64,000 nucleotides of DNA from the NCBI GenBank assembly GCA_010909165.1, contig MU008202.1, positions 62,001-126,000 on the forward strand, in the 5' to 3' direction. Origin of the DNA: Anthoceros angustus (Eukaryota > Plantae > Anthocerotophyta). The notes beneath the pieces were generated by a model. The model did no database searches and was not told where the DNA came from. It saw nothing but the letters and a program-made list of their open reading frames with translations. The position numbers and the translations under genes are program-made. The first letter of the stretch is position 1, and every line of letters starts with the position of its first letter. Positions 3,971 through 64,000 of the stretch are shown here, one piece after another.

Positions 3971-4312
3971 CATTTCAGAAGCCACAATTGGCACAAACCA
4001 AGCGGCCTGACTGTCTCCAGAAACCTTCGCATTAAGGGCCCAGCTTGTGGGAATTATCGCACATGGGCTAACTTGTGGACGCCGCGCAGCATAGATAAAC
4101 CAAGAGTCCCTGCAGCAGTCGCAAGCAGAACGATTAGACAGCCGACCACGTCATCCAGAGAAGGTTGGGAAAAATTTCGTGCAAAGAGTGCGGCATCCAG
4201 ACAGGACCACATACCGGAGTGGGCAATCTCCGGCCACGACGGCGTCACGCTTCCCGACCGCCCTAGGAGCCTCAAGAAAACGAACCCACCCGACCTCGAG
4301 GTCGACCACGAT

Positions 4313-4365
4313 CCAGCCAGCTTCACAGCAACCCCAGCCAGCTTCACAGAAACCCCAGCCAGCTT
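4313..4365. repeat. 21-bp tandem repeat (~2.5 copies) upstream of DCN1
   Basis: CCAGCCAGCTT recurs at 4313, 4334 and 4355. Confidence 0.85.
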
Positions 4366-4949
4366 TGGGCGGCTAGGTGCGATGCATTTCGAAATGCATA
4401 GGCTCAAGTGGCAATGTTTTTTGCGCTGTTTGTTTCATGAGGCTTGTGGACCCTTGCTTGTCTGTGTCTCCCAAGCCATGCTCTTTTTGTGGTCCTACAT
4501 GGGGTTACTTTTCAACAAGGCTTTAGCCGGTGTGCGCGGCTGCATTTGTGTGTCAGCTTGGGACCTCCTGCTGCTACGCTCCATGTGTGGCGAAGCAAAA
4601 GCGCTGTGTATGCGCTGCAGATCTGTTTGGGATATCAGTCACCCTTGTTTGTGGCCCACAGCATGCTCAGCAGAGGAATGTCTGACTAAGTAATGGATGC
4701 ATTCATTGCTACGTATCTAGGTTCTTCCTGTCTGCTGTGTCTGAGCATGGTCGAACCCGAACGCCATGTGCAACAATGTAAGTATGTGATCTGGGAGCTA
4801 GACTTTTATAACTTCGACTACCTACTCGAAGGAATTTATGGGTAAAATTATAAAACAAATAGCAGTATTTATTTTATTAGTATATACAAAATATTTATTT
4901 AAAATATGGTAGATAGAGTCATAAAGATAGGATGACTCAATCTACCATA

Positions 4950-7900
4950 TGATAATGTGAAAAAAAAACCCTTTAAGTCCAGGGGGAAATGGAGGACTAT
5001 ATAATGCTTCATAAATAATGTATCGAAACCTACCATCGCTTCTGTCACATGGTAACCAAGGACATGAGAGACCCTACCGAACAGGAGGGTAGTTCATAAG
5101 GATCATCTATGTTATACTAGGGAAGCTCAAGGGCCTTTCACTATGAAAAGCCAAAATGGATTACGTAGTCATTGTCATGTGGAGAAAGATAAGGAGTGAG
5201 TATTTATATGCATTTTTCACTTTTCTTTCGATCACTAAACTAGAGCTTCTTGCCTGGCTTACAACACCATTTGTGAGTGCAGGACCCATGAATGTAAATG
5301 TTTCATCAACCCGATAACAAATAGAACTCATGAAGAACTCATCTCATAATTATATAAGATATAGACTAATTCAAATTAGTGACAGTATCAACATTATCAA
5401 CAACTACACATATTTGTTGAGTCTTAAATTTACTCAATAAATTATCAAAAAATATATAATTTGATTAAATTAATTATTATAAATAATTCCATCTAATAAA
5501 CTCATGTGTGGGATCCACATGGTTGGTGAGCAAGCTTCGAATCCGAGACATATTAAGCTCATTATCAGTAGTAATTTGAATTTGAGCGCAAAAAGTGTGT
5601 GTATTTGTTTCATGTGGTGGCTGATTATTGGAATCAATAGTTTGTAGCTCAAAATCACCTTCGTTTTCCATGATGATGTCTAGCATCTCATTAATAAGAA
5701 AAGGATCAAAAATATTACCTATTACATGGATTGTGGATGAAACAAGATCCGAAGATGGGGAAATGCTTGATTTCTCGCTATCCACTTTTGCCAATGTCAA
5801 TGCTGCAACAGCTTGCTGCTGAATAATGTGGTCAAAAAGAGGGTTAAGCCGTCCCTTTGAAACAACACACGCATTTTGTATAGAAAGTGGCATTGTTTGT
5901 AAAGTCAAATTACATGCCATAGCTTCAACTAATGGCGTAATAGCATCGCTAAAGTGTTTCGTTGCTTCGCGAGGAAATTCCGCCGGGAGCACATCCACAG
6001 CTAGAACTATAATTCCATCGCCATCCATATCCCCATGATAAGAAGTTGTAAGGGGATTAAATCGGAAAAAAGGTTTATCTATACTTGTTTGTATATGTAC
6101 ACATTCAATGGAGCCATTGAGATCGCATGAAATGTCCGCAATACCCAACAAAAGTATGCGTGCATTAAAATCGGAGTCGCTCTCTTTAATCAAGAATAAC
6201 TTTTGGATTTGTTGATTTGTTAGTAAACGTGGAATCTAGGTTCCCAATACATACGATTAATGATAAATGAGGCATAGGGGCAATCTTAGTATGAAATACG
6301 GTGATATTCTTGGATTAGCATAATAATGTGCTTTATCAAAATCCTTACATGGATTGTTATGTTGAACCATATGTGAAGCATCTATTAGACATCCAAAGAC
6401 TTTAAACCTATTGTTACATTACGCATTAAGAGTGTTTTTCACCAAATTAGGAAGATCTTTTGCATCGACAAAAGAATGTGGTAAAAGCTTGAAAATCTCC
6501 ATAGCGCCTTGTCCTACATTTCCGCATCCCGTAAAAACGAAGACTAAAGGACAAATAGCAGAAGGCAACCCAGTTTGCTTGATCTCTTCTCCTAGAACAA
6601 CTATTGCCTCGCGAGCCTTATTCAAAGAGGGATACATATGAGCAAAACCCAATCCCAAAAAGGGGGTTGAAAACCCTAGGTTTAGGAACCTCTCCCCTAT
6701 CCCTCGTAAAAAGTCCAACATCCCTGCCCGACCTGCAAATTCTCCAAAAGCAACTACGCGCTTACCCTCTTTTGTGGTGATAAGCTCATAGTCGACTAAT
6801 GTGACATCCTTTTGCAACACTTCACTTAACAATCCCATGTTATGGGCGTCTCAGCGTATGTGAGAAGAATGCATATGATCGTTTTGATAATGTGAAAAAA
6901 AACCCTTTAAGTCCTGGGGAAATGGAGGACTATATAATGCTTCATAATAATGTATCGAAACCTACCATCGCCCCACATGGTAACCAAGGACATGAGAGAC
7001 CCTACAGGAGGGTAGTTCATAAGGATCATCTATGTTATACTAGGGAAGCTCAAGGGCCTTTCACTATGAAAAGCCAAAATGGATTACGTAGTCATTGTCA
7101 TGTGGAGAAAGATAAGGAGTGAGTATTTATATGCATTTTCACTTTTCTTCGATCACTAAACTAGAGCTTCTTGCGGCTTACAACACCATTTGTGAGTGCA
7201 GGACCCATGAATGTAAATGTTTCATCAACGATAACAAATAGAACTCATGAAGAACTCATCTCATAATTATATAAGATATAGACTAATTCAAATTAGTGAC
7301 AGATCAACATTATCAACAACTACACATATTTGTTGAGTCTTAAATTTACTCAATAAATTATCAAAAATATATAATTTGATTAAATTAATTATTATAAATA
7401 ATTCCATCTAATAAACTCATGTGTGGATCCACATGGTTGGTGAGCAAGCTTGAATCCGAGACATATTAAGCTCATTATCAGTAATTTGAATTTGAGCGCA
7501 AAAGTGTGTATTTGTTTCATGTGGTGGCGATTATTGGAATCAATAGTTTGTAGCTCAAAATCACCTTCGTTTTCCATGATGATGTCTAGCATCTCATTAA
7601 TAAGAAAAGGATCAAAAATATTACCTATTACATGGATTGTGGATGAAACAAGATCCGAAGATGGGGAAATGCTTGATTTCTCGCTATCCACTTTGCCAAT
7701 GTCAATGCCGCACGACTTGCTGCTGAATAATGTGGTCAAAAAGAGGGTTAAGCGTCCCTTTGAAACAACACCGCATTTTGTATAGAAAGTGGCATTGTTT
7801 GTAAAGTCAAATTACATGCCATAGCTTCAACTAATGGCGTAATAGCATCGCTAAAGTGTTTCGTTTCATGAGGAAATTCACGGAGCACATCCACGGCTAG

Positions 7901-8802
7901 AACTATAATTCCATCGCCATCCATATCCCCATGATAAGAAGTTGTAAGGGGATTAAATCGGAAAAAAGGTTTATCTATACTTGTTTGTATATGTACACAT
8001 TCAATGGAGCCATTGAGATCGCATGAAATGTCCGCAATACCCAACAAAAGTATGCGTGCATTAAAATCGGAGTCGCTCTCTTTAATCAAGAATAACTTTT
8101 GGATTTGTTGATTTGTTAGTAAACGTGGGAATCTAGGTTCCCAATACATACAGTTAATGATAAATGAGGCATAGGGGGCAATCTTAGTATGAAATACAGG
8201 GTGATATTCTTCTGGATTAGCATAATAATGTGCTTTATCAAAATCCTTACCTGTAGGATTGTTATGTTGAACCATATGTGAAGCATCTATTAGACATCCA
8301 AAGACTTTAAACCTATTGTTCTGTTCTGCATTAAGAGTGTTTTTCACCAAATTAGGAAGATCTTTTGCATCGACAAAAGAATGTGGTAAAAGCTTGAAAA
8401 TCTCCATAGCGCCTTGTCCTACATTTCCGCATCCCGTAAAAACGAAGACTAAAGGACAAATAGCAGAAGGCAACCCAGTTTGCTTGATCTCTTCTCCTAG
8501 AACAACTATTGCCTCGCGAGCCTTATTCAAAGAGGGATACATATGAGCAAAACCCAATCCCAAAAAGGGGGTTGAAAACCCTAGGTTTAGGAACCTCTCC
8601 CCTATCCCTCGTAAAAAGTCCAACATCCCTGCCCGACCTGCAAATTCTCCAAAAGCAACTACGCGCTTACCCTCTTTTGTGGTGATAAGCTCATAGTCGA
8701 CTAATGTGACATCCTTTTGCAACACTTCACTTAACAATCCCATGTTATGGGGCTGTCCTTTGTGCGTATGTGAGAAGAATGCATATGATCGTTTTGATAA
8801 TA
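4950..8802. repeat. ~1.9-kb direct tandem duplication covering the 3' part of LKR and its downstream flank
   Basis: GATAATGTGAAAAAAAACCCTTTAAGTCC starts at both 4951 and 6886, and the copies align throughout. TGATAAT is present at all three boundaries (~4950, ~6885, ~8795). Confidence 0.93.
5477..6890 (-). pseudogene. LKR: 5'-truncated duplicate of the LKR gene (lacks roughly the first 90 codons)
   Basis: ORFs 6419-6838 and 5477-6193 match the 7392-9067 copy. It begins abruptly at the duplication junction with no promoter or ATG, and has frameshifts at ~6200-6420. Confidence 0.85.
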
Positions 8803-9067
8803 CGGTACCAAGCTTAGGACTTTTCACTCCAAGAATTAGGCCACACTTGGACATGTCTTCACTTACCTCACATCCTACCTCCTCATAACTTGAGTTTTGA
8901 TAGATGCGTTTAGTACATGGTTGTATTACAATTTTTTGAATTCCTTGGCTGGTAGGTTCTTGTTTATTTCTGCTTAAGAGCTCCAAGCAATGAAATGGAG
9001 TGAGTGGAGCCCTTCTCTCCCATTTATTTTCTTCTTTCAAAATCCCTACCACTCCATTTCCATACAT
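7392..9067 (-). CDS. LKR: Intronless plant-type lysine-ketoglutarate reductase (LKR domain + linker, no SDH domain), ~564 aa when the two copies are combined
   Basis: MYGNGVVGILKEENKWERRAPLTP, YAFFSHTHKGQ, AFGEFAGRAGMLDFLRG, ICPLVFVFTGCGNVGQGA, NCMYWEPRFPRLL, ADISCDLNGSIE and AVDVLPAEFP are hallmark plant LKR motifs. The linker motif GNIFDPFLINEMLDII is followed by a stop. Frameshifts after ~7880 in this copy are absent from the other copy. Confidence 0.88.
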
Positions 9068-10089
9068 CTTGAATTCTTCGAGATTCTTTTGTTAATAGTA
9101 TGCATAAACTAAAGGTATGATATATGTCTTCAAAAACCAAGATTACCACAAAAACCGTGTTTCAAATATAGATATTCCTTTCATATCTATTCATCTATTT
9201 CTCACGTTGTATACAAAATTGAGAGTTTATAAAATATTTTTAAAGAAAATTAATTTTATTTATAGATTTATCATTATGTATATTTGGTGAATGAATTTTA
9301 AGAACTACCCCCACAAGTTCAAATATTTTCAATCTGAATAGCTAATTTCTATGACATAAGAGAAGAGGTGCATTGATTTCTTGAAGAAGCTAACACATGA
9401 CCTTTTTATATGATGAGAATAGAAAATATAAGTAATATTTTAATAAAAGAGATTTATATATTATAATTAGGGTTTTCCTTCATATACATTTTGAGGTTTT
9501 TCTTTGTGTTCCTTGTTATTATATTCAATTTCAAACTTGAGAGACGTTCCTACTTCCAGCTTTAAACTTGGGAGACATACAAAATTGATTTGCATGTATG
9601 GTTATTGGCAGGTGAGTATGATTAAAATTGGAATGTATATTATATTTTTAGATTTATGTGAGAGCTGATTTTTAAAAGTTTTATATTTTTATTAACTGGT
9701 ATGATATATATATCTTCTCATTGGTAGTAGTCAATATAATATCTTTGTAAGAACACATATAGTTCTTTTATTTATGGAAATTCTTTTCTTAAATCAGACA
9801 AAACATGCATAAAAATTGTATTGTAAGACCTAAAAGCAGCTGTGTTGATGTATAATGCTATGAATTATGTATGAAATTTCAGAAACCACATGTAAAAGTT
9901 ATGTTTTTTATTTTTTTCATAAATTAGGTTAATAAACGATAAGATACATGTCTTAAACTAACCACCTAGTTATGCCTGCGAAGTGTGTAGCTCTTCGACG
10001 GGACAAAGCTGTGACGATGTCCTCGATGGCATGCGCGACGAAGATGAAAGGATGAAAGCGGAGTGAAATTCTAGCGTCCTCAGAGGGCG

Positions 10090-11765
10090 ATGGCTCCACC
10101 AGCACAGAAGTATGATGCAAGCAAGGCAAAGGCGCCTCTGGAAGCCACAGTGGAGGGAGCACCTTCCTCGTCCGACCCTTACTTCAAGGGGAATTTCACA
10201 GCTGCACTGGGCCGGCAGGAGCCGCTGGAAGTGAAGGGAACGAGCTCCCGAGCCCTGGGAGCTCTGAAGCAGGGGCCCAACAAAGGGCAGGGGCACACCC
10301 AAGTGAAGCTGTCGGATCACCACTCCATCTGCATCTCGGCAAGGGGGGTGGAGGTGGCGGTGGGCTCGGCAGATTCCGCTCTGTACATCGTCAATGTGGA
10401 GACGGGCAAGTTCGTGAGGACGATGGGGAGCAGGGAGTTCGGGCACACGGAGTGGGTCACGTGCCTGGAGTACTTGGAGAACGGGCGCATCTTCAGCGGA
10501 GGCATGGACAGCAAGCTGTGCCTGTGGGAGAAGAACGTCCCGAGGTGCAGCTACATGGTGGGCCACAACTCGGCCATCTCGGGCTGCCAGGCCATGGCGG
10601 CCAACGATGTGGGGGTGAGCTCCAGCTACGACGCCACGTTGAAGGTGTGGGATTTGGCCAAGGGCTTCAACGAGTACAAGCGCGGGGTACCGTGCTTGGG
10701 CACGCTCAAGGGGCATCACGGGCCTGTCACGAAATTCGTTCTGGGCGCCCAGGAGAGCAGCATCGTGAGCGGGTCCAAGACTGGGGAAATCATCCTGTGG
10801 GACGGCGCGGATGGGAGGCCGCTCATGCACTGCGTGGACGCGCACAACGGGGCTGTCACTGCGATCGCGAGCATGGTGGGCGGTAACAAGGCGGACAGGG
10901 AGAATGCGGGAACCGGGGAGATGTTCCTCACGGGAGGCCTGGATGGCATGCTTCAGGTTTGGGACTTCCGAGTGAGCCAAGGGCCTGTCTTCTCTGTCAA
11001 AGCCCACAGGTTCCCTTCCCTACCAAGTTTGCACAGCCTTTCACTCCATCGCTCACCAGCTTTCCTCTCTTGGGAAAGAGAAATTTTGCATATACGCATC
11101 AATTGCTGTAGCTGGCTTGGCTCCACGTCCAATTTCCTGCCTGGAAAACTACGTATACGCATCAATTGTTGCAGCACCATGACGTCACGGTTACGTCCTC
11201 AGCCTGCCTACTGCACCCGCACTCACCCATGGATATGATCCTGCTAAATCTTGTGGGCCTTGTTGCGCCAAAGCCTGCCTCCAATGCTGTGTGGCAACTG
11301 TACAGGACATTCCAAGGATGTCCAGTCGCGTTTGTGGGCGTTTCGATCACTGCAGGTAAGGCTCACGTGGTGACGGCAGGGGGAGACAAGGTCTTGAAGG
11401 TTTTGGACCCCCGGGCGTCGTTCCAGACTGTCCACACCATGCCTGACCACACCACCAACATCACTGCCCTTCAGGTCTATGGTAACACCTCCATCTTTCC
11501 TTCCCGTTGCGAGCTCCCAACCAAGTTGAGCACTTCAGCCATTAGGTGCACTTGTTTATGCTGGTTTGATACATCCATGGCAGGTGTACTGGCGTGGAGC
11601 GGGGCAGCGGATGGGAAGGTGCTGCTGCACGAAGTGGCCAGTGGCAAATGCTTGTATTGCCTCCCTCCCGTTGCAAAGGGCTCTGTGAGATGCCTCACTC
11701 TGGCAGGAGACAGCAAGCTTGCTGTGGCAGGGGATGACGGAACCGTGGTCATCTACCCCCACTAA
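10090..11765 (+). CDS. WD40-repeat protein of unknown function (probably 3 exons)
   Basis: Repeats GHTEWVTC..SGGMDSKLCLWE, GHNSAI..SSSYDATLKVWD, GHHGPV..SGSKTGEIILWD, AHNGAV..TGGLDGMLQVWD and VTAGGDKVLKVLD. Introns inferred at ~11010-11305 and ~11482-11583. Confidence 0.88.
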
Positions 11766-17176: not shown

Positions 17177-20100
17177 TCTGTCGCATGCAAGTCAAAGACG
17201 GAGAAGCCCACCCTCTACTAGCACTACCTAGACCGGCACCCACGGCGCGGCGTGCCCGTCGAAAATCATAGAACGATAGAAGCAGCACAAGAGGAAGCTG
17301 GGAGTACAACCAAGCCGTATGCACACTACGGAGGAGGCCTCCATGTGCAGACCGACCGGAAACCTCCCCAAGAAACGGCTCTCCTACACGATCACAATTG
17401 ATGTGAAATCGCGTTCTTCACCAACAGCAGGCCAGCCAATTGCTAGACCAAAGCAATTCCCAAACACACACCGAAAGACAGCCAATTCCAGGCGCCGCAC
17501 ACAAGGCGCGAGCTGCGCCAGACAAACAAGAGCAGACCGCACCAGAGTCACAGGAAATGACTCCCTCTTCACCCTCACCCTATACCTTGCCCTCTACCTC
17601 ACACTCACACCCTCACCGCCGCACCGACACCAACCCAGCGCTGCGGCGGGATGCCCCGCGGAAGAAAGATCCAAAAGCAGCCGCACACCAAGAAACACGA
17701 CACCGCACACCAAGCAGCAGAGGCGGCCGCTGCAAATCCTCCACCACCCGCAGATCCAGAAAGCGGCCACAAATTCCGCCGCTTCAACACTCAGCAAAAG
17801 AGCCGAGGCAGAGCCGCCTGCTCCACGGCTCTCCAAGAATCCGTCCTGAAGGCACCTACTCAGGACACACCTTCACACAAGCCTGTCCCACCCGAGAGAA
17901 GCCACACCAGAAGCACAGCAAGAGAAGCAACACCGCAACTCCAATACTCCGAAAACCTCCACAGCCAGCGCTCCGAAGAGCCAAAACCAAAGATCCCTGC
18001 GAGTGGGAAGGAGAGGAGGAGAAGGAACTCGAGAGAGGAGGAGGAGGAGGGGAAGAAAGGGAGGAAAGGGAAGGAGGAAGCACAGGAAAGCGCCCGCTTG
18101 AAGGAGGGGCGGGGCGCCCTCTGGGAGCATTAAGCCGGCGAGGCGACTCCAGGCTGCTCTTGTAGCTCTCTCTTGCCCGGGCCAGGAGGCCAGGAGGGAG
18201 GGAGGCGCGGTAGAGAGAGGATGACCCGCAGCGGAGAGAGAGGATGGGATGCGGAGCAGCCCGGTCGTGCTCCGTGTTTGAACAGGAAGATGTATGTCCG
18301 AACCATGGCAACACGTAACGGGCCGTTGTACCCACTGATTTTGGGGGGGATTTTTTTTGGCGGGCTGCCCGGAATCCGGATGCCATACATGATGGCGGGC
18401 GTCAGGCATGATGCCCGCATGGCCCATGCGAGGGCATGCATGACGTATGAGGTCCCACGCGGCCGTTGGAACTGATTGCCGGAATCCTGTGGTTCCTTTC
18501 GCCGGAACCGGACCCAGCTGGCAACCGGCGGTAGCGGGTGTCGCCCGGGATTCACCGCATATGCCCCATCCGGCGTCTTGAAGTTTGCGAAAGATGAGGC
18601 CACGGATCTTGGGTCATGCAGGTTGCAAGTGCAAGTGAAGCGATATGTTAGGTTCAATGGACCGGAATTGCGCATGGGATTGAAATGCTGTTATGAATCT
18701 TACCCTTGGGTGGCTTACGTCAATGGGAGGGCGCTTGTTTGTGGAATGTGTGGAACATCCATCTACTTGTCTTATTCCCCTCGTCCCTTGCCCATTTATT
18801 GCAAAGCATATGGGCATATGAAGTGTACCAGATCATGTATGCTTGTTTTGTTTCACAAGATAATTCTGGTCTTAATACGTGGAGGATAGAATTTCAAACT
18901 ACTTACTTTCGTTGGTGAATGGGTTTCCTTAGGTCTATAATTTTTAGTTTACAACATAAACGTAACAAAGTGAAAGACACACTTCTTTTATACCAAAGCA
19001 CATGGGGGACTGAATTTTAAGAGCAAAGAGACGTGTGAAACAAGGAGAAGTATATATTAATGGGTTTTGAATCCCAAGGATAAGTAGTGAGTACATGTAC
19101 ATATTGTGTGGGGCTGGATGCGTCCTTCTCTTCCTGGCAAGGGAAGGATATGCTCGTGAGGATAAGCATGTGGAATGCAGTAGCTGGTGGGTCGTGCGCG
19201 TTGCTGAGGATATGGATATGCTTCAAGCATGTAAGGACTATAACAGTTACGTGGTGGCAGGTGCAAGTGCGTGTAATAGGGCCGTGCCAACTGATCGTGT
19301 ACTGTGCTTTCTTCCACCAACATGTGAAGAAGCAGGCTTTTGCAGTGAACATACAGAGTACGTAGATACTTTTCTCCACCAACTTCACTGTCTTCGATAT
19401 TTTCCACCGACCCACCAAAAGATGTACGCTCATGAATGATTGGGAACAACTTGGGCCTCATGAATTGTGCTCGGGCTGTTTGTAGCGTGGAAGGACTCGG
19501 GCTTGAACTTGGGCTTGTAGCTTGAAAGGATCGCGCTTTATTGTTCAATTTTTTGCTTAATTATGTTTCTATGGTCTCGAGTGCTAGATACTTGAATCAA
19601 ATATGTGGTTTATGAATAAGCAATGATATAGCTACTCTTTCGGAGACATAACTATGTATTTAAACCAACATAGCGCTAAAATGTTGCTTGGTTCCACACC
19701 AAGTGGAAAGCATGACGGGTCATCATGAGATTGGAGAGTGTTAAATTTCACTTAGATTAAATTTTATTTAAAAAATATATCAATGTATCACATTTGTGCA
19801 TAGGATCCGACTTGGTCAAGTGTTTCTCTTCAGATGCATACATTATTCCTTGCGTGTAGCAGAGGAAAGAATGAGTAAAGCAGCGAGAGATAAGTTTCAA
19901 AGAAAAAGACAAACTAGTTTATGAAATACTTGCCTATTGGCTGGGTTTTAAAGAAAAAGACAAACTAGTTATGAAATGTTTGGCTATTGGCTGAGACATG
20001 CAGTGGACCTCTCCGATAACTAGATAAGCTTTTATCTAGTTATGGAGACCCAATTTGATGAGTCAATTGGGACAAAAAAGATGTAGCCGACCAATGAAAT

Positions 20101-28800: not shown

Positions 28801-29163
28801 GCAGGGTCCGAGGGAGTGGGTTGCGGGAGCCCGGGGAACCCGGGGACCCGGTGACCCGGACGCATCGGATGGCGGGGCCCTCCCTCGAGGACAGGCTGGC
28901 CAGGCCGTCATGGCTCCGGCTCCGGGGGTGCGCGCCACGTACCCGCCCGGGCGCCCTTCCCCTCGCTCTCCGACAGCGACACGTAGGGCGGTCGGTCGCC
29001 ACCTACCACCCGCTTGTCCTTGGCTTTTTGGGGACGCCGCCGACGCCGACGCCGACGCCGACCAGGCACCAGGCACCAGGCACCAGGCAGCAGCGTCGTA
29101 TCATTGCCATCGCCCGTTTGCCCCACTTCGCCGCATGCATATCATATGCATGTACAGTCGACC

Positions 29164-29965
29164 CCCCCTAAGTGGGACTGGTTCGGAGTGCCTTTAGAGG
29201 TCCCATTAAGGGAGGTGTCCCGATTAGATTTTTCCCCATTTTAAAAATCAAAATATTATAAATTCAAAAAAATCAAAAATATCTAAAAAATAAAAATTCA
29301 AAATCTGATTGATAGGATTTCCTAAAAATAACTTTTACCATTTCTCTACATAGTTGCTTGAAAGCTAGCACTCCTTCTATGAAGATGAAAAAACCTCTAC
29401 TATTATAAAGGAAAAAGCTTAGCTTAGGAGTCTTCAATCACACCTAAAATTCTATCGTGCTTTGAAATAATCGACAATACTCCTTTGCACCCGCGATACT
29501 TTGAGATGATGACTAATCACGTGTTTCTGAAAGATATTAAGCAATGCCAAAGAGTCTGTACTTGATGACATCTTCCATAGTCGGTCATGGTAGGGGTGGC
29601 ATTGTCGCTACTTCCTCTTCAATATTTTCGGTAAGCTCCTCTTCGACAACTTAAGGGAATAGTGAATCCCATATTTCTTATAACTTATTCTCGATCGTCA
29701 TGTCCTTATACTATATTGATAGGATACAAAGTCTGTTCAATACCTATTTCATACTTATATGATTCTTTTTTTATTTTTCTTTTTCAAATTTTTAATAAAA
29801 AATAGAAAATCCCATTTAAGAAGGTGAAACTAACATGAATGTTTCAAAAAAATCCCAATTACTGTTTAAAGAAAAGTTCCATTTTTTACGCTGTAAACTA
29901 AAAGAAGTAGGATGGGAGGTCCCATTTAGAGAGGAATCCCATTTATAGAGTTCCCAATTAGGGGG
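29164..29965. mobile_element. AT-rich non-autonomous TIR element with CCCCC termini
   Basis: Left end CCCCCTAAGTGGGAC versus reverse complement of right end CCCCCTAATTGGGAA (13/15 match). Repeated subterminal CCCATT/CCCAAT motifs. Flanking CC on both sides may be a 2-bp TSD. Abrupt GC drop relative to the flanks. Confidence 0.7.
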
Positions 29966-32872
29966 CCGGACTTGTATGTGAGCTTCATGTACCATACGGT
30001 GCATGAGAGATTGAAACGATTTAACAGGCGAAGTAGATAAACCCAAAGCCAGGTTGAGGCAGGTCAGGTCAGGTGAGGGCAGCTCAGCTCGGGTCAGCTC
30101 GCAGAGTCACCGAGTCACAGAGTCACACATGAGGCCGTGGCTGTCGGTGCAGAATCTGGATTCGATCCCCGACCCCCGATCCCGATCCCCCAGTTCCAAG
30201 GCTCCAGGTTTAGCGCAATCATAAGGCACTGTTATGGGCGGCCAATGGCGAAGGCAAAAAATTCCGAGCGCATCGCGCTTGGGAAGCGGGTAACGGAACG
30301 GCAGCGTGCGCCTGCGCCTGCGCCTTATCCCACTGCCAGTGGGGTGAGAAGTGAGAAGTGGGCACTGGGGTGGGCTGGACTGTCAGGCCATGAGGCCATG
30401 GCCCCCATGCCCCATGAGGAGGGGAATGGAATGGCATGGATTCGGAGGCCACTGGAATTCGTTCCGTTCATGGTTTGTGCCTTGCAACGCCCAACTACCG
30501 CAGTAGCCTGTAGTACCCGCCTCAACTGTCCCGCTCTTCCCACCCTTCTCTCTCTTCCTTCTCTTTCTCCCTCTCTGTCTCCATCCTCCAGCCCTTGGGG
30601 TGCGTGACTATATCAGAAAATGTAGGTAATGTCGAAATGGGTTTGAACGATGGAGCAGGAAGGAAAGGAAAGGAAAGGAAAGTTGTGGGCGGGTGCGTTT
30701 GACTGGGTCCAGCGCTGTTGGCCAGCCTGGCCATACAACCACGTGGGTACGCTGCGCGCATCTGTGCGCTTCCGCGAACCCGTCTCCTCGTTGACGGTGA
30801 CACCGCGCTGACTGTGCCTTGACCCACCGGCTGCAGCCGGTCGCGCCGGTGCGTCGGTTACCCCTTGAACTTTGTGGCCATGGCCGCCCCACCTACACCA
30901 GCGCACTCACTGTGCACTGCCAGCAGCCAGCAGCCAGCAGCCAGGAGCCAGGAGCCAGGAGCCAGCAGCCAGCGGCCAGCAGCCAGCACACGCCCAAGCC
31001 CCACCACCACCGACTACCCACAAATCTATACGTCTGCAGTTGCACACGGCCAGACCAGCTCCGGTTTCCTTGTTTCCGTCCTTGCTCTTGTGTGACAAAG
31101 CGATTCCCTCAAATCCGCATTCCACTTTCCGCAAATCCGCAAATCCGCAAGCGCAAGGGATCGATTGGAAATTGGAACCGGATATGGATATGCTAAACAA
31201 TGCAAGAATTGAAACGCCTCCTCCTTTTTACCGCCGCTGTGGCTGTAACTGATGGGACGGAAGCTGAGGAATGTAAGGTTGCTACTGTACATGTCTCCGT
31301 GTCCACGGATGTATGTGGGTGATGGTGGTGAGTTGTTTGGCGCCAGACTATTCTCTCAAAAAGTAAAATGAAAGATACGAGTCCCGTCTGCTGGTTTGCT
31401 GGATGGGGCAGTGGCCAGCCCTGCCTATCGCAACATGACCGTATACATGAGATTCATCCGGGGAGAGGGAGTGGGAGAGGGAGAAGGGCTCCCGGAGATG
31501 GCGAGCCAGAGGAGTGATGAGTCGTGAAACGTACAGAGGGGCGTGAGGGTGGTGACGTACCCACCACGCTGCCCTTGTGCGTCCCTGGGCTGCGTGTGTT
31601 TTGTGTACGCACATCATCTATGCGGGCATGGCCCATGGGCCATGGAATATAGGGCCGGGGCGCAGCGAATGGGCATCCTCCATGCGCCACAAGTTGAAGC
31701 GGGCAGCAGGGCGGGCGCATGCGGGTGCTGCAGTCTGCACACTCTGCGGGTTTGCGGGAGCATGAGCTTGCTTGCGCCGGATGCAAGCAAGGTGGGACGT
31801 ATGGGCCTCTCGCAGGGCTGGGACTCTATCGGGACTGGCCTACACAGGAGCATGCACGGAGGGCGAGCAGGCAGGCAGACAGGCAGGCAGGCAGGCAGGC
31901 AAGCAAGCAACAAGCAACAAGCAAGCACGCTGCACAGAGAGCGAGCAAGCGGGCAAGTACCAGCGGAGGGCTCACTGCCCGAGAAGCCAACACGCAAGGG
32001 ACACGGCAAGGGCATCGTCACCCTCCTGGACTCCTGCGACCTCCATTTGCATTTCACGGAGCAGCAGCTGCTGCACGCTGCAAGCTGCAAGCTGCAACCT
32101 GCAAGCGGCAAGCTCCAGGGAGGGGAGCAACCTCCAGGCTCCAGGCTTCCGGGCAAGTTGGGTCGGTTGGCCATGGCATGCGCGCTGCAAGGACGCGCCC
32201 CGTCTTAAATTTTTTCCAAATTCTGCCCCGTCGGACGTCGGAGCTTGTCTTGGCTGGCACGCAAGTGGCCCGTACCGGGCAGGCTCCAGGACTTGGCCAT
32301 CTCCCATCCCGAGTCCCCGCCCATGGGCAGGGCGGCAAACCAGCGCCATCGCTGGCCGGATGCGAAAAATCTGGGCCTGCCCGGGCTCCAGCTGCAGCTG
32401 CTCCACTCCAGTCTGGCGAGGTCGCTCTAAAATGGCCCCCCATTTAATGACGCGCCCTGTGGAAAATAGATTATATTCGCAGCGGGGGCGCCGGATGCGG
32501 GCCGTGTCGGTTTTCTTTCTTTCTTTCCTGCCCAGCCCGGCCCGGCGTCGCCGTCGGCGACGGTGTGTCTTCTTACGATTTGGCGGGCCAAGAGGCGCGC
32601 AGGCGGGGCCAAGTGTAAAAAGGAGCAAGGAGCGGGAAGCCAAGCGTGTCAGAGCCTGCTCCTGGACTCTGCGAGCCGGAGCCGGAGCCGGAGCCGGACC
32701 CAATAAACTCCATGCCACCCCTTTCCCACCTTTCTTTACCATTTTGTGATTGTGCAGCCTTTGGCCCCTGCTCCCCTGCTCCCCTGCTTCTGCTTTGCAG
32801 CGACGCGCACCTGGAAGGCAGCAAAGCAGCACCGCTCTGCCTCTGCGCGCATGGGTAGAATCTTTGCCTCCA

Positions 32873-48000: not shown

Positions 48001-48230
48001 TAAGGTACAGTTTTAAGTCAGTATGCATACATTTAAGTCGACAAAAAGGAGGCCAACTGGACAGTATGAAGCCCGTGCTTCAGTTGTAAGGTGTAGTTTT
48101 AAGTAAGTATGTACACATTTAGGTCTACATAAAGGAGGCCAACTCGACAAAGCCCGTGCTTCAGTTGTAAGGTGTAGTTTTAAGTAAGTATGTACACATT
48201 TAAGTCTACATAAAGGAGGCCAACTCGACA
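48001..48230. repeat. ~81-86 bp tandem repeat x3, followed by a ~30-bp dimer (48234-48295)
   Basis: TAAGGTGTAGTTTTAAGTAAGTATGTACACATTTA..AAAGGAGGCCAACT units start at 48001, 48087 and 48168. Confidence 0.92.
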
Positions 48231-48569
48231 ATATGTAGCACTTGCTTCAATTAACTATTCTATCTGTAGCACTTGCTTCAATTAACTATTTTATCGAACT
48301 AAAGCAAATGTGAACTTGTGAGCATGAAGTCTCCTTCCCTAGGGAAACTCACATATCTTATTTTTATGTTCACCTGTCTATCTCTAAAATTCAAAGAATA
48401 CGACTTGCTTGTTCCTTCACAAAAATAAATTGATCTTCATAAGCTGTCCTGGAGTTGTTTTATCTATTGTGAGATTCAATGCGGTCCATACACTTTTCTT
48501 ATTATATTTCCTAAATTTTAAAGAATACGACTTACTTGTTCAATCACAAAAATAAATGATCTTCAAAAG

Positions 48570-49509
48570 CTATCCTGGAATTGTTTTATCCGTTGTGAGA
48601 TTCAACGCGGTCCACACACCCTTCTTATTATACTCACCTTCTAATACATTCTTGTTTCTAGAGAACTTGAACTTGCCAGGTCCAATAGGTTTGTTTTTTG
48701 TAAAAGTGCCTTCATACACATTTCCATCTCTTAAAATCCATTCTCCTTTTGTAAAATTTCCCTTATCCCAAGTTCCTGCAAACTGCATATAGTTTCTATG
48801 AATCAATCACAATTCTACTTTTTTTTGTATTTTATTATTGTTAAAAATATTTATGTTTATCATATACCTTGTAATAACATGAAAGAAAATCACCCAATAT
48901 AGATTGATACCTGGCTCATTGTTGCCTTAAAATAATAGGTGCCAATTCCATGCTTTTTATCATCTTTCCAATCACCTTTGTAAAAATCTCCATTCGGATA
49001 AATGTACATGCCTGTCCCATACTTTTTGTCTCCCATCCAAGTACCTGTAGGCATGTTGATTTTAGATCCATTTGAGATCTTTTTAATAATAAAAAATATA
49101 AAAATTAATTTTTAATGGATCAATAACTCACCTTCATAAGTACTTTTATCAGGATATGTCATAATGCCATATCCCGTTTTCTGATTTGCTGCATACATGC
49201 CATCATACTTGGCTTGTTTCTTTTTCTTTGTGAAATTATACACGCCCTTTCCTTGTTTTATACCCTTTTCCATAAACCCTTTGTAGGTATCCCCATTGGG
49301 ATAGGTACAGGTCCCTTCTCCTTGAGGTAAATATCCCTCTAGAAGAGTGCCAGTCCATTCCTATCCATTTTTTTCTTGCTTAGAAAGTGATAAAACAAAA
49401 ATTGTACGATTATAATGATCAATTTGCTTAAATCAAAACACACACTTACAACTTTAGGTTCTTCCTCCTCATCCCCTTCTTCTCCCTCCTCATCCTCATC
49501 ATCAGCCAT
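48570..49509 (-). CDS. RSP10: MORN-repeat flagellar radial spoke head protein (RSP10/RSPH1-like), 4-5 exons, AT-rich; mostly missed by the ORF track
   Basis: MADDEDEEGEEGDEEEPKV|GTAAG; GEGTCTYPNGDTYKG..KQGKGVYNF..YDGMY..GYGIMTYPDKSTYE; GTGMYIYPNGDFYKGDW..KHGIGTYYF; QFAGTWDKGNFTKGEWILRDGNVYEGTF..LEGEYNKKGVW. This layout parallels Chlamydomonas RSP10 as recalled. Confidence 0.85.
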
Positions 49510-52500
49510 GTAACTCTTTCACTAAGTTGTAAACTTCAGCTTATTTTGTTTACCAAAAAAATTATACATATTTACTAGCTCAATAAATATCTTATACATC
49601 ATCAATATGGTCAAATCATAACAACTCCATATACTGAAATTGTTAGCTGTACCTAGTAATGTTTTCAGCTGACTCTACTATAGAGCTAACTAACATCAAT
49701 TTTGTAGATAAAGTTTGTTGGGCTATATATAGCTCACTAAAACTGTTATAAAAATTAACACCTATTATTTAGGTTTCAAGCATATACATACCATATAGAA
49801 TTCATTCGCAACCGTCACTTTCTAGGTTTTGTTTAGCTTTTCCATTTGGTCATTATTTAAAGCTAAATCAAGTATATTCTAGCTTATGTTGTTAAATCAT
49901 GAAGAGATGTTTCAATCCGGTGGTGATATGGGCAAATAGAGGTATGTATATACCCATACTAGGAATTGATTTTGTATCAGAAAAAAATTAAATGTCTGAA
50001 ATATTATCTTCTTGGGACACTCGGGTCACGCATTATTGAGCATAATATGTATAAACCTATTTTGATCTATAGTCCTTGCACTAATTTATGGTATCAGGTG
50101 ACAGATGTATCAGACAGAACGTGAATGATCATCCTGCAGAATATCAAACATAATCAATGTTCATGCGCAAAATGGACTAAAGTAACTAGATTATCTCACT
50201 ATATCCCATAATAACATCCAAAGAAATTGAATATGATGTATCCAAGATGAGTAATGATCAAGATGCATAAATTACTTTTGTATACCTCATATATTTCTTA
50301 CATACAATAAATTTTTTGGTTGCAGAAGTCTTTAAAAATATAGATCTCGTTAGTTTGTTTCAACCAAGCAGAAATGACGGACCGAGATCCTACCAGATTA
50401 TCACAATCGAATCGCACTAGCCCAAAAGAACCTGTTCACAAAAGACTTGATGTGAACAGGGATGTTAAAGGAAAATCTCACATTTCTCCTTTGCCGCCTC
50501 CCAAGGAGAAAAAGTTCAAGATCTGGCGCCCGTGAATTATTCCGGACTACAAAAACATTGAGACATGTATGTAGATTTTCCTTTTCTCCTCGCTAAAATC
50601 CTTTGCTATGCATGACGTGAATGTGCACTTAAAACAAGGATGATCAATTTGCTTGATGATGATCAATTTGAACATGTTATCCAGGAAAGAAAGCATGTTG
50701 ACAGTAGAATTCGCTTTAGACTTTCGAGCTCTTGAAACAGGAATGTGCTATCTTCTTGTACATGATCCTGGAGATCCGGTTCTTACTTGTTCCAAACATT
50801 GTCAACTGAACAGTGCAAGTATTAGACTTGAATTTCGTATAAGAGGGAATATACTCACCGTGTGATGAAATAATTCTTTAAAATTTAATTGAATTGTTGG
50901 ATGACAAAACAAGATTTATGCAAGTGTGATTCTTCATATGCTCAACAACAAATAAGTATCTTGAGCCAACAAGACCTGTGTCAAGGGAGTTGTGTAGAGG
51001 GTGACATGAGTGAAATAGTACTCTTTGTTACACGTATATATAGATCATTGTGACTTACTACATATATCAATCAATTCAGATTGAAAAAGATTTTTGGAAT
51101 GCCAAGAAAACATTTTCCATTATTCTTGAATTGGATGGGATTTAATCCTTTTAGTGGTAACAAGAGAAATTCAAGGCCCGGCAAGTTCAGCTTTTTTAAA
51201 GTGATGAACACCAATTTCTTTGAAGATAGAAAAATGAGGAGAAGAAATCAAATGAAACCATTATGTGCACGAGAAAAAATCGTGTTAAAGAAAACTTCTG
51301 AAAATATCCCCAAAACCCCCACACCGTAATTGGAAGTATTGCATACGGACATAGACGTCTGCATTCAATAAAATAGCTTGTAATAGGTAATATTATCCTA
51401 TCATGTCCTAAGCCCACAATAAGTACTTATCCTACTGTTACTCATGATATCCACCCACTACCTACTGGATATCTAGCTGCCCTTCTAAATATTTGTATGC
51501 AGGAGGGTTTCTAATTAATAGAAAAGATGGTACATTTCATGGACTCCGTTCCGCCTAAAAAACAGCTATTTTTGACTTATTTAGGTTTTTAAAAATCCGT
51601 TTTAAAAACAGAGTGCCTTCAACCTTGCGCATCCTCCCATGCTGCCCACAACTCCGTCCTTAGTGGACTTGAATGACATTCTTCTTCTTCTTCCCACAAC
51701 TTGCCAGCAGTGAGATGCAGAGACCGCCAACGGGAGCGTGGACTCCGGGACCACGACATTCCTCCATTGCACAAGGGAGGACGCGTCTAGGGCTAGGCAG
51801 GAACGCATGGGAGGTTTCTTTTGGTTTTGTTTCCGTGAATTTTTGGACAAAATTTTGTCCATAATGATCCGTCGTTCTGGGTTAAAACACTAGTACTGAT
51901 GGGGGATGTCATCTGGCCCCGGCGTCTCAATCTGCGCAGCGATAAATGCTTCGGGGGTGCCAAATCGTCCGTGGCATCCCAGCTGAGGTATATTCAACCG
52001 GGAAATTTGATTTCTTTTAAGTTGGAGCGACGCATCGGCTGCAAGCCCTGCACACGGAAATGCAGCTTCATCGATCGCACACTGCACCGTACACATGCAC
52101 TTAATTGTTGGATGCATGCGTGAATTGCAGCCTGCAAATGCCAGACACAGGTCTGGAGTGTGGTGTGTGCAGATGACTCCTCCTCTGGTCAGGACTAAAG
52201 ATGGTGTGTACAGAACCAGAAATCTATGCTCTGGCAAAGCACACTGTGACCATATCTTTTTGGCCTAGCGGCCTCTACGTTGCGCTAGGGTCCATTCCCA
52301 GTACTACTACTACCGTCCCCTTGCAGCCAGGCAGCGTTTCTACGTAGTCACTCATCCTGTTCACTCCACTGCGGGTTTTCACTATAAAACTGCACAGAAA
52401 AACACTCTCCTTCCTAAAGCCGACCTTGCCGTAGAGTGCACAAGGCATACATGAAGTCCCTGCCTTGCCCTCAGATTTATTCGATTGAAAAACAGGCATT

Positions 52501-61924: not shown

Positions 61925-62518
61925 CCAACCCACTCCAATCGAGTATGTTCACCCATGTTCTTTAACATTGTGCACAATTTTTGTATGACACTAAGTTAGG
62001 TTGCCACAAAAGTGGCTTGTAATGGTAAATTTTGCCCTCTACATTATAAAAAAGATTAAAAATTATAACCAATAGATTTAGTCAAAACTCAATAGAATCC
62101 TTTAAAATGCTTACAAACGCCTCAAGAAATTGGAGCCATTACCACCTGAGTACTCATTGGATGGTCCGAATTTTAGCCTGTTAGAAAGGCTTGTTTGTGG
62201 ACTATGTACTTGTTTTTGAGAAAAAGATAAAAATATTTTTGAGTCTAAGAAAAGCCCTTTCCAACACACTCAAAAACTCTACCATCGATCAATATCCCCG
62301 TACAATGGCTTCCGTTTCTTAAGGGGTTAAAGTTTTTTAAAAGATTCTTTCACGTTTCGACCAGATATATTGGTCAAAATTTTTCAATTATTTTTTTATA
62401 ATGTAAAGGGCAGAAGTTTCACAGAAGGCCATCTTAGTTAACATGAATTAGTGTCATACAAAAGATATGCCCAGTGTTAAAGAACATGGATTAAAAGACT
62501 TGATTTGAGTAGGTCGAA
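61925..62518. mobile_element. Non-autonomous element with long imperfect terminal inverted repeats (MITE/MULE-like)
   Basis: 61953-61994 CCATGTTCTTTAACA..TTTTGTATGACACTAA is the near reverse complement of 62448-62489 TTAGTGTCATACAAAA..TGTTAAAGAACATGG. The match extends weakly ~25 bp outward. Confidence 0.7.
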
Positions 62519-62524
62519 CAGGAT

Positions 62525-62910
62525 GAGGTTAGTTGATGTCTAAGATGAAGAAAATTTTTACTCAATTCAGAGACTTTATAGATATTTCAAAGTATACATC
62601 AAAGTCCCGCACTAGGTTTATTTTATAGATATTGTAAAGTATACCTCGAAGTCCCGCACTCGGTTTTTTGTCTGGAGTAACCCGATAGGGCACTAACAAC
62701 TGGCGGACGTGGGTTTACTTTATAGATATTTTAAAATATACATTGAAGTCCTGCACTGGGTTTTTGTATCTGGAGTAACCCCATAGAGCACTAACAACTA
62801 CCGTGGGTCGGGCAATACGAGGCTAGTTGCTGATGTCTAGGATGAAGAAAACTTTTCCTGAATTCAGACACTTTATAGATATTTCAAAGTATATATCGAA
62901 GTCTCGTGGG
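62525..62910. repeat. Array of TTTATAGATATT..AAAGTATA..AAGTC subrepeats (another copy near 63590), transposon-like
   Basis: The core motif occurs four times, and CTGGAGTAACCC..AG.GCACTAACAACT twice. Confidence 0.75.
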
Positions 62911-64000
62911 TCGGGTCCTACGGGTTAGTTATTATCGTAGGAGCCAATGGTTTTGGACGAAATTTAATTAATTATAGCAACTATCAAAATTTTAAAAAAT
63001 ATTGAAATGAGTGACGAAAACTAAAATATGCAAATGGTAAGAGCCGAAAACATGCTGGTGTGCACATACCTCGGTTGTGAGGAGCAAGAGAGTGCACATC
63101 TCGGCCCAAGGAGGGGGAGAGTGCACTCCTCCGCCACTGAGATCCAATCTCCCGGTAGCACAGCAAGATTGGATTCAATTCTTCGAGGGGTCCTGGAATC
63201 TTGTGCAGCTAAAGCCTATGTTGCAGTATATTCTACACCTCTACTTAGGTACCCATCTATTTCATTTGGTATTGAAACCTAGGTTATGAGCCAGTCTTAA
63301 AAGGCTAAGATTAGGTAAATAGATAAAAAAAATTATAATATTTATTCATTATCTTTTCTATTCATTTATAAGTTATGATGTATTATAAAATTATATAGGA
63401 AGATATATTATTCTATATATTTAATATACTATTGAAATATAAAACATCAATGTATATTTTGTTAAAAACTAAAATTATAAACTCATACAAGTTGAATTTA
63501 TTTTTTCAAAAAACTAATTATTTGACATTAGGGTGTCCAAACCGGTGGCTCTTCGGTAATGTGTAAGATGAAAAAAATTTTACAAAATTTAGAGACTTAA
63601 TAAATATTTCAAAGTATACATTCAAGTCCCGAGGTTTTTTATGAAGAATGCCCAGCACACGGGAGACGAGGGCATGATGTTTGCGGCCATGAAGCGAGGG
63701 GATGAGTGATAACCCATCCAAACATTGATCAGTCCCAAGGACGCTGAAGTTCCGATGAACTCATGGAGTTCTAATATACTCATGTTTGGATGTAAAAACA
63801 TGAACAAAACTTGCTAGAACACTAGCATCCCAACAACATGACAACATACGGCAAATGTTGTAAGGCCAAGTCTTCCTCACCAAATTTCAATCATTCAAAA
63901 CTGTAAGGGTTGAAGAACAACGCGAGAATGAAAGTACGGGAGGGAAGATGACAAATCTTAATGGATTTAGAAGCACCTGTAGTTTGAAAATGGGCGATTG

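Follow-up and report, generated by a model that had tools for sequence, protein, structure and literature searches.

A candidate single-exon, stand-alone LKR gene in an AT-rich island of the hornwort Anthoceros angustus

The locus and its reading frame

The gene described here lies on contig MU008202.1 of the Anthoceros angustus assembly (GCA_010909165.1), in a stretch of 64,000 nucleotides (positions 62,001 to 126,000; hereafter the window) whose own numbering is used throughout. It encodes the lysine-ketoglutarate reductase (LKR, EC 1.5.1.8) half of the bifunctional plant enzyme LKR/SDH, also called alpha-aminoadipic semialdehyde synthase (AASS), in which LKR is fused to saccharopine dehydrogenase (SDH). 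It is rather probable that this is a native, conserved, single-exon, stand-alone LKR gene of 564 amino acids, and that the tandem copy and the frameshifts seen in the assembly are technical. The gene occupies an AT-rich island (4800-9980) with a GC content of 0.27-0.40, against 0.5-0.6 in the surrounding DNA, and its frame starts on the minus strand with an ATG at 9067-9065. The GC content of third codon positions (GC3) is 0.33 in the LKR frame and 0.83 in the neighbouring WD40 gene, in agreement with a preliminary description, made from the sequence alone, which had noted A/T-ending codons unlike those of the neighbours.

As assembled, the locus holds two tandem LKR units, the upstream one running from 8800 to 6891 and the downstream one from 6890 to 4956, with 267 nt of unique 5' coding sequence preceding the upstream unit. 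The downstream unit opens inside the coding sequence at ...SKRSYAFFSHTHK, and the junction of the two units reads ...TTTTCACA, followed by the hexamer TTATCA and then by AAACGATC. In the downstream copy (5477 to ~6890) the first ~90 codons are missing, and an in-frame stop, TAA, interrupts it at 6419-6421. The upstream copy had been described as one continuous LKR frame over 7392-9067; a land-plant-type LKR frame does exist there, but it is split in the assembly into an open reading frame (ORF) of 439 amino acids (7748-9067), a frameshift, and an ORF of 115 amino acids (7392-7739), with further indels within 7392-7895. The ~564 amino acids given for the protein are reached only in a hybrid of both copies: when 9067-7900, clean 5' sequence from one, is followed by 6003-5477, clean 3' sequence from the other, the frame is open over 564 codons. 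This hybrid was used in local alignments, while database searches were run with the ORF pieces of the window separately. Both copies stop, as had been claimed, at the same position, with the common terminus ...THEFIRWNYL-stop at 7392 and 5477, and no intron interrupts the alignment of the frame.

The nearest protein among 1.8 billion representatives was P0001 (63% identity over the LKR domain), with a conifer LKR/SDH next (59%). A single ORF without interruption encodes the 563 amino acids of P0001; it lies in a genomic contig of 9.4 kb (L001, a Logan contig from SRR33208241). The hybrid and P0001 align from end to end with 58% identity, share the first methionine, and stop within 1-2 residues of each other; the alignment extends to ...DPTHEF(I/L)xW, and the stop follows two to three codons further on.

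Differences between the two copies

Global alignment of the two units gave 29 gap events of 1-5 nt, several garbled clusters of mismatches, and ~3 isolated substitutions. All defects of the coding sequence fall in one contiguous block (6233-7882), made up of the 3' third of the upstream copy and the 5' two-thirds of the downstream copy, so that each segment is perfect in exactly one copy, and every gap in the coding sequence is a deletion in this noisy block. Two of the changes that separate the noisy from the clean copy, CTG to TCG (8153/8152) and AGAA to GTAA (8321-8327), recur in well-assembled flanks (9558/9559 and 8970/8971) as differences between the window and X1, a sequencing run made on the same organism. 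The clean form at 8153 encodes the invariant Cys of the NCMYWE motif, and the other form is therefore taken to be the error. The damage is read as technical because a ratio of indels to substitutions of ~10:1 fits a raw long-read consensus and not the decay of a pseudogene, because the same odd changes recur between X1 and the well-assembled flanks, and because the repeated unit, at an X1 depth of 8-12 against 12-15 for the unique flanks, shows no sign of doubled coverage. The A. angustus assembly was made with wtdbg from 3.8 Gb of Nanopore reads and polished with Pilon using Illumina reads filtered by k-mer depth (PMC7027989); the filter for the polishing reads was set at 60-165 (PMC7027989). 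Such a pipeline would leave repeats and regions of odd coverage unpolished, and the second copy and the frameshifts would come from long-read consensus that stayed unpolished in a unit of 1.9 kb, duplicated either falsely or recently. It is very probable that the indels in the noisy block are technical, whereas for the duplication itself the balance only leans towards a false one; the organism probably has an intact LKR gene.

The duplication may instead be real and the indels alone technical, leaving an intact upstream gene followed by a promoterless, 5'-truncated duplicate. The microhomology at the junction fits such an event, and the k-mers of a duplicated unit would surpass the 60-165 filter, leaving the repeats unpolished (PMC7027989). 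X1 depth is not doubled on the unit, however, and in organism C (run X5, ~92% identical) a 6.7-kb contig contains a single LKR copy, with 6298 joined to 8234, so the event would have to be very recent. This reading is possible but unlikely.

Distinctly improbable is a dead gene in this accession, with a real tandem duplication followed by real disabling deletions and neither copy full. As assembled, both copies are indeed broken, the upstream one lacking an intact 3' third and the downstream one lacking its first codons and containing a stop; one X1 contig repeats the defective stretch at 6231-6451, and a real duplication would account for the TTATCA microhomology at the edges of the units. 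On the other side, an excess of indels about ten-fold over isolated substitutions is the opposite of natural decay, one perfect copy is left for each segment with the defects confined to a single block that spans the junction, X1 departs from the well-assembled flanks by peculiar errors of the same types, its depth is not doubled, and a sister species has one colinear copy.

Splicing out of the noisy block by an intron born from the duplication was also considered. It was excluded because the donor and acceptor would have to sit in the 247 nt over which the two copies are identical, and neither AGGT nor AGGC occurs there.

In this assembly, false or unpolished duplications in AT-rich islands can make intact genes resemble broken pairs. 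The recurring CTG to TCG and AGAA to GTAA changes resemble a systematic basecalling signature and could serve to flag unpolished stretches elsewhere in the genome.

Protein domains and predicted activity

The first 440 residues of the protein form the LKR domain, followed by a disordered stretch and then by the plant interdomain PF04455 (Saccharop_dh_N). Within the LKR ORF, the Pfam family AlaDh_PNT_N (PF05222) was matched with an E value of 6e-17 and the LKR domain of human AASS with one of 1e-81 over residues 6-438. The motifs WERRAP, ILGVK, FFSHTHK, and FTGCGNV all lie in the 439-residue ORF, bearing out the earlier list (RRAP, GVK, FFSHTHK, and TGxGNV); the Arg pair (WERRAP), the catalytic Lys (GVK), the catalytic His (SHTHK), and the dinucleotide motif TGxGNVxxGA are kept. 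Across 24 LKRs, 133 columns are conserved in at least 90% of sequences, and the window protein retains 123 of them, including RR, GVK, SHTHK, and GxGNV; the other 10 are changed, for example D to S in the LLD motif. The start matches that of plant LKR/SDH, with no added presequence. The interdomain is predicted to fold as beta-alpha-beta-beta-alpha, and the ORF stops after its last helix, before the variable spacer and the SDH Rossmann fold.

An AlphaFold (AF2) model of P0001, with a predicted local distance difference test score (pLDDT) of 85, gave template modelling (TM) scores of 0.88-0.90 to the lysine-oxoglutarate reductase (LOR) structures of human AASS (PDB 8E8T, 8E8U, and 8DDA; 0.88 to 8E8U), with yeast Lys1 and alanine dehydrogenases far lower. 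The human enzyme shares the fold and the active-site motifs, but lacks a plant-type interdomain, is fused to SDH, and is only ~35-45% identical. Fungal Lys1 (PDB 2Q99) is likewise a stand-alone enzyme of the same fold and catalyses the same reaction in reverse; it is, however, distant (E 3e-5 over 150 residues; TM 0.5), uses NAD, and is biosynthetic.

Judged by sequence, the protein most likely has ordinary LKR activity, and would condense lysine with 2-oxoglutarate using NADPH to give saccharopine in the cytosol, without a fused SDH. That it is a neofunctionalised enzyme of the AlaDH/PNT fold, whether opine-type, acting on some other amino acid/keto acid pair, or biosynthetic in the manner of Lys1, is very unlikely. 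The long stem of its clade (0.77, see below), the loss of the SDH partner, and the 10 altered columns could hint in this direction. Every recognised catalytic and substrate-binding motif is kept, however, and the conserved active site argues against a new opine-type function; human LKR is the best match in both structure and sequence, with yeast Lys1 much weaker, and a Lys1-like role would be without pathway context, since lysine synthesis in plants goes by way of diaminopimelate. For the opine-type and reverse-running proposals of the preliminary description no support was found, the motifs being those of an LKR and the stem branch alone hinting at change.

The interdomain (5477-5830, minus strand) weakly matches residues ~261-350 of the cyanobacterial arginine dihydrolases AgrE (Alr4995, PDB 6LRH) and ArgZ (Sll1336, PDB 6JUY). 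These are enzymes of another context, and the match (E 0.04-0.1) is below significance and a lead to the fold only. The structures 6LRH and 6JUY are the only solved ones that appear to contain PF04455.

Relatives, constraint and native status

Beyond its single LKR copy, the organism C contig crosses the AT-rich upstream stretch and reaches the WD40 gene (9966-10297), while at the other end its synteny with the window stops at ~5314. Since the island is linked to the WD40 gene in this relative, it cannot be a contaminant or a piece of foreign DNA joined on in error, and the contamination that had been raised as a possibility was not borne out. A foreign island, whether contaminant or recent horizontal acquisition, has next to no credibility: the sharp drop in GC content and the intronless coding sequence would suit it, but the syntenic contig largely refutes it, the protein nests within streptophyte LKR, and no donor closer than the 58-63% ortholog was found.

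Contigs from a further relative, organism B (run X2), cover 7917-8849 with 65 mismatches and no gaps. Among the listed differences from organisms B and C, changes fall 13/4/18 on the three codon positions, and 15 codon changes are synonymous and 16 non-synonymous, in a small and selected sample. These differences are biased towards third positions and point to a ratio of non-synonymous to synonymous substitution rates (dN/dS) of roughly 0.3, as far as such a sample can tell, which in a check that had been proposed for the gene speaks for constraint. The gene is native and long-conserved.

A metagenome scan brought up 65 LKR loci and no further LKR-only ortholog; all plant-like loci among them have many introns, encode the bifunctional enzyme, and stand closer to seed plants. 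Neither of the two clean ORFs had an exact match in public assemblies, and literature searches returned no paper naming both saccharopine and Anthoceros. The contig carrying P0001 shows no synteny with the window apart from LKR; beside the ortholog it carries a complete single-exon gene for a RabA/Rab11-type GTPase (L001 7301-7960, minus strand).

Phylogeny, introns and the missing SDH half

In the LKR-domain tree, a check proposed earlier, the window protein and P0001 form a clade (100/100) on a long stem (0.77). This clade lies inside the streptophyte LKR clade (100/100), without resolution among moss, fern, and seed-plant sequences. Plant LKR/SDH proteins (conifer P0121, A. lyrata P0398) share with the window protein the same LKR domain (52-59% identity), the N-terminus M-x-GNGVVGIL, and the interdomain PF04455; the gene in the window differs in lacking PF03435 and PF16653, in its single exon against 12 A. 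lyrata introns, in its GC3 of 0.33, and in its long stem.

The Arabidopsis lyrata LKR/SDH locus (L002) has 24 coding exons, with 12 introns in the part homologous to the window ORF. Its exon borders recur in metagenomic plant loci, and all 12 introns are absent from both the window and L001, so that the earlier statement that the gene lacks introns stands. This pattern fits an origin from a processed mRNA or a wholesale loss of introns that predates the split of the two lineages. Behind the stop there is no run of A that could be a 3' poly(A) tract, nor did the LKR locus show a target-site duplication; given the age implied by an ortholog of 58% identity, such marks could have eroded. Of the earlier proposal of a dedicated, probably retroposed LKR, the first part is upheld by the ortholog of the same length with the same stop, by the syntenic single copy in a relative, by the 123 retained columns, and by the third-position bias of substitutions, and retroposition is plausible but unproven, with 12 introns missing but neither a poly(A) tract nor a target-site duplication nor a parent gene found.

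SDH is missing from the locus. PF03435 and PF16653 are absent, the window protein and P0001 both stop short of the SDH Rossmann fold, and no SDH domain was found anywhere in the window and no SDH similarity in L001; SDH is thus not part of the same polypeptide, as it is in a bifunctional LKR/SDH, and the claim that none follows downstream is confirmed over the whole window. No hornwort LKR/SDH or SDH could be recognised among the results of protein searches. When the SDH half served as the query, seed-plant, fern-like, and moss-like sequences came up and nothing attributable to a hornwort, which says nothing on absence.

LKR without SDH is common among the homology matches from angiosperms. 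LKR-only transcripts produced by intron polyadenylation (Arabidopsis, cotton, switchgrass) and LKR-only genes have been documented (PMC3017810), the latter in poplar and in gene models of Citrus, Mercurialis, and Brassica. Annotated LKR-only proteins of ~450-500 amino acids (P0017, P0019, P0026, and P0013; Mercurialis, Citrus, Arabidopsis lyrata, and Cynara) group in the tree with their own angiosperm relatives, and the SDH half has therefore been lost repeatedly in plants. The angiosperm forms, which arise within that group, either end right after the LKR domain by running into an intron (~450-500 amino acids) or are partial duplicates of recent date that contain introns; the window gene, in contrast, is shared by two lineages that are only 58% identical, is intronless, keeps the whole interdomain, and stops ~35 codons past the next exon border. 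This border (A. lyrata 527/528) follows the conserved linker exon. An intron-polyadenylated LKR form was ruled out as a candidate by the continuation of the ORF through the interdomain and beyond this border. To the LKR-only genes and transcripts known from flowering plants, the hornwort gene adds a new and older example.

Interpretation

Taken together, the island would hold a single-exon gene, intact in the organism, that encodes an LKR catalytic domain, a disordered linker, and the interdomain, and that ends just before the start of SDH. The gene probably arose in an ancestor of the two carrier lineages from a processed or truncated copy of an intron-rich LKR/SDH gene.

Several observations count against this reading. 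The X1 contig at 6231-6451 matches the defective copy including its stop, with 1 mismatch and 2 gap letters, and if X1 is an independent short-read run, the defects that it matches are real. A real duplication would leave just such a trace as the 6-bp TTATCA at the edges of the units. The stem branch of 0.77 could reflect relaxed or changed function, retroposition comes without a poly(A) tract or a parent gene, and one possible RNA run has no contig on the LKR gene.

Plant lysine breakdown is regulated in part through the LKR-SDH fusion, and monofunctional LKR forms are reported to be more active. A conserved stand-alone LKR that retains the interdomain makes it testable whether the interdomain serves LKR itself, and also whether hornworts run the saccharopine pathway with separate enzymes. 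A further-reaching and doubtful idea is that hornworts took LKR/SDH apart, with the intronless LKR plus interdomain as their only LKR and SDH placed in a separate gene or lost. If this were so, saccharopine would be released as a free intermediate or end product, and the interdomain would be a regulatory module of LKR and not a passive linker.

Features of the locus and its surroundings

The features of the island are collected in Table 1.

Table 1. Features of the LKR island, in positions of the window
Feature	Position	Strand	Remarks
Clean 5' part of the LKR coding sequence, codons 1 to ~390, upstream unit	7896..9067	-	Part of the 439-amino-acid ORF; AlaDh_PNT_N and human AASS LKR matches
Noisy 3' coding part, upstream unit	7392..7895	-	About a dozen deletions of 1-3 nt and mismatch clusters relative to the other copy; frameshift near 7745-7772
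Noisy 3' flank of upstream unit, to the junction	6891..7391	-	Pairwise alignment of the units
Noisy 5'-truncated start of downstream unit	6233..6890	-	Deletions of 5, 3, 2, 2, 1, and 1 nt; ORF 6419-6838 ends at TAA
Clean 3' coding part: end of LKR domain, disordered linker, interdomain	5477..6232	-	238-amino-acid ORF 5477-6193; Saccharop_dh_N and AlaDh_PNT_C matches; stop 5477-5479; aligns with the P0001 C-terminus
3' flank of downstream unit	4956..5476	-	No poly(A) tract; T-run at the end, then TTATCA (4950-4955)
Very AT-rich upstream spacer (GC 0.25) that separates the LKR start from the divergent GC-rich WD40 gene	9068..9970	-	Organism C contig crosses into 9966-10297
TTATCA microhomology, left edge of the repeated unit	8795..8800	-	Same hexamer at 6885-6890 and 4950-4955

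The WD40-repeat gene (10090-11765, plus strand) is GC-rich, has several exons, and is divergent from the LKR gene; the possible RNA run has contigs on its 5' end. The LKR island has no repeat in common with the rest of the window, and no Rfam families were found in 4000-11000, nor were inverted repeats of at least 40 nt. Four further AT-rich islands (GC 0.32-0.41) lie at 19001-20000, 29001-30000, 48001-51000, and 62001-64000. The distal 3' flank of the unit (4956-5314 and 6891-7230) contains a plus-strand ORF of 76 amino acids (6892-7122) that belongs to no Pfam family. Colinearity with the organism C contig is lost at ~5314, so this flank may be a lineage-specific insertion.

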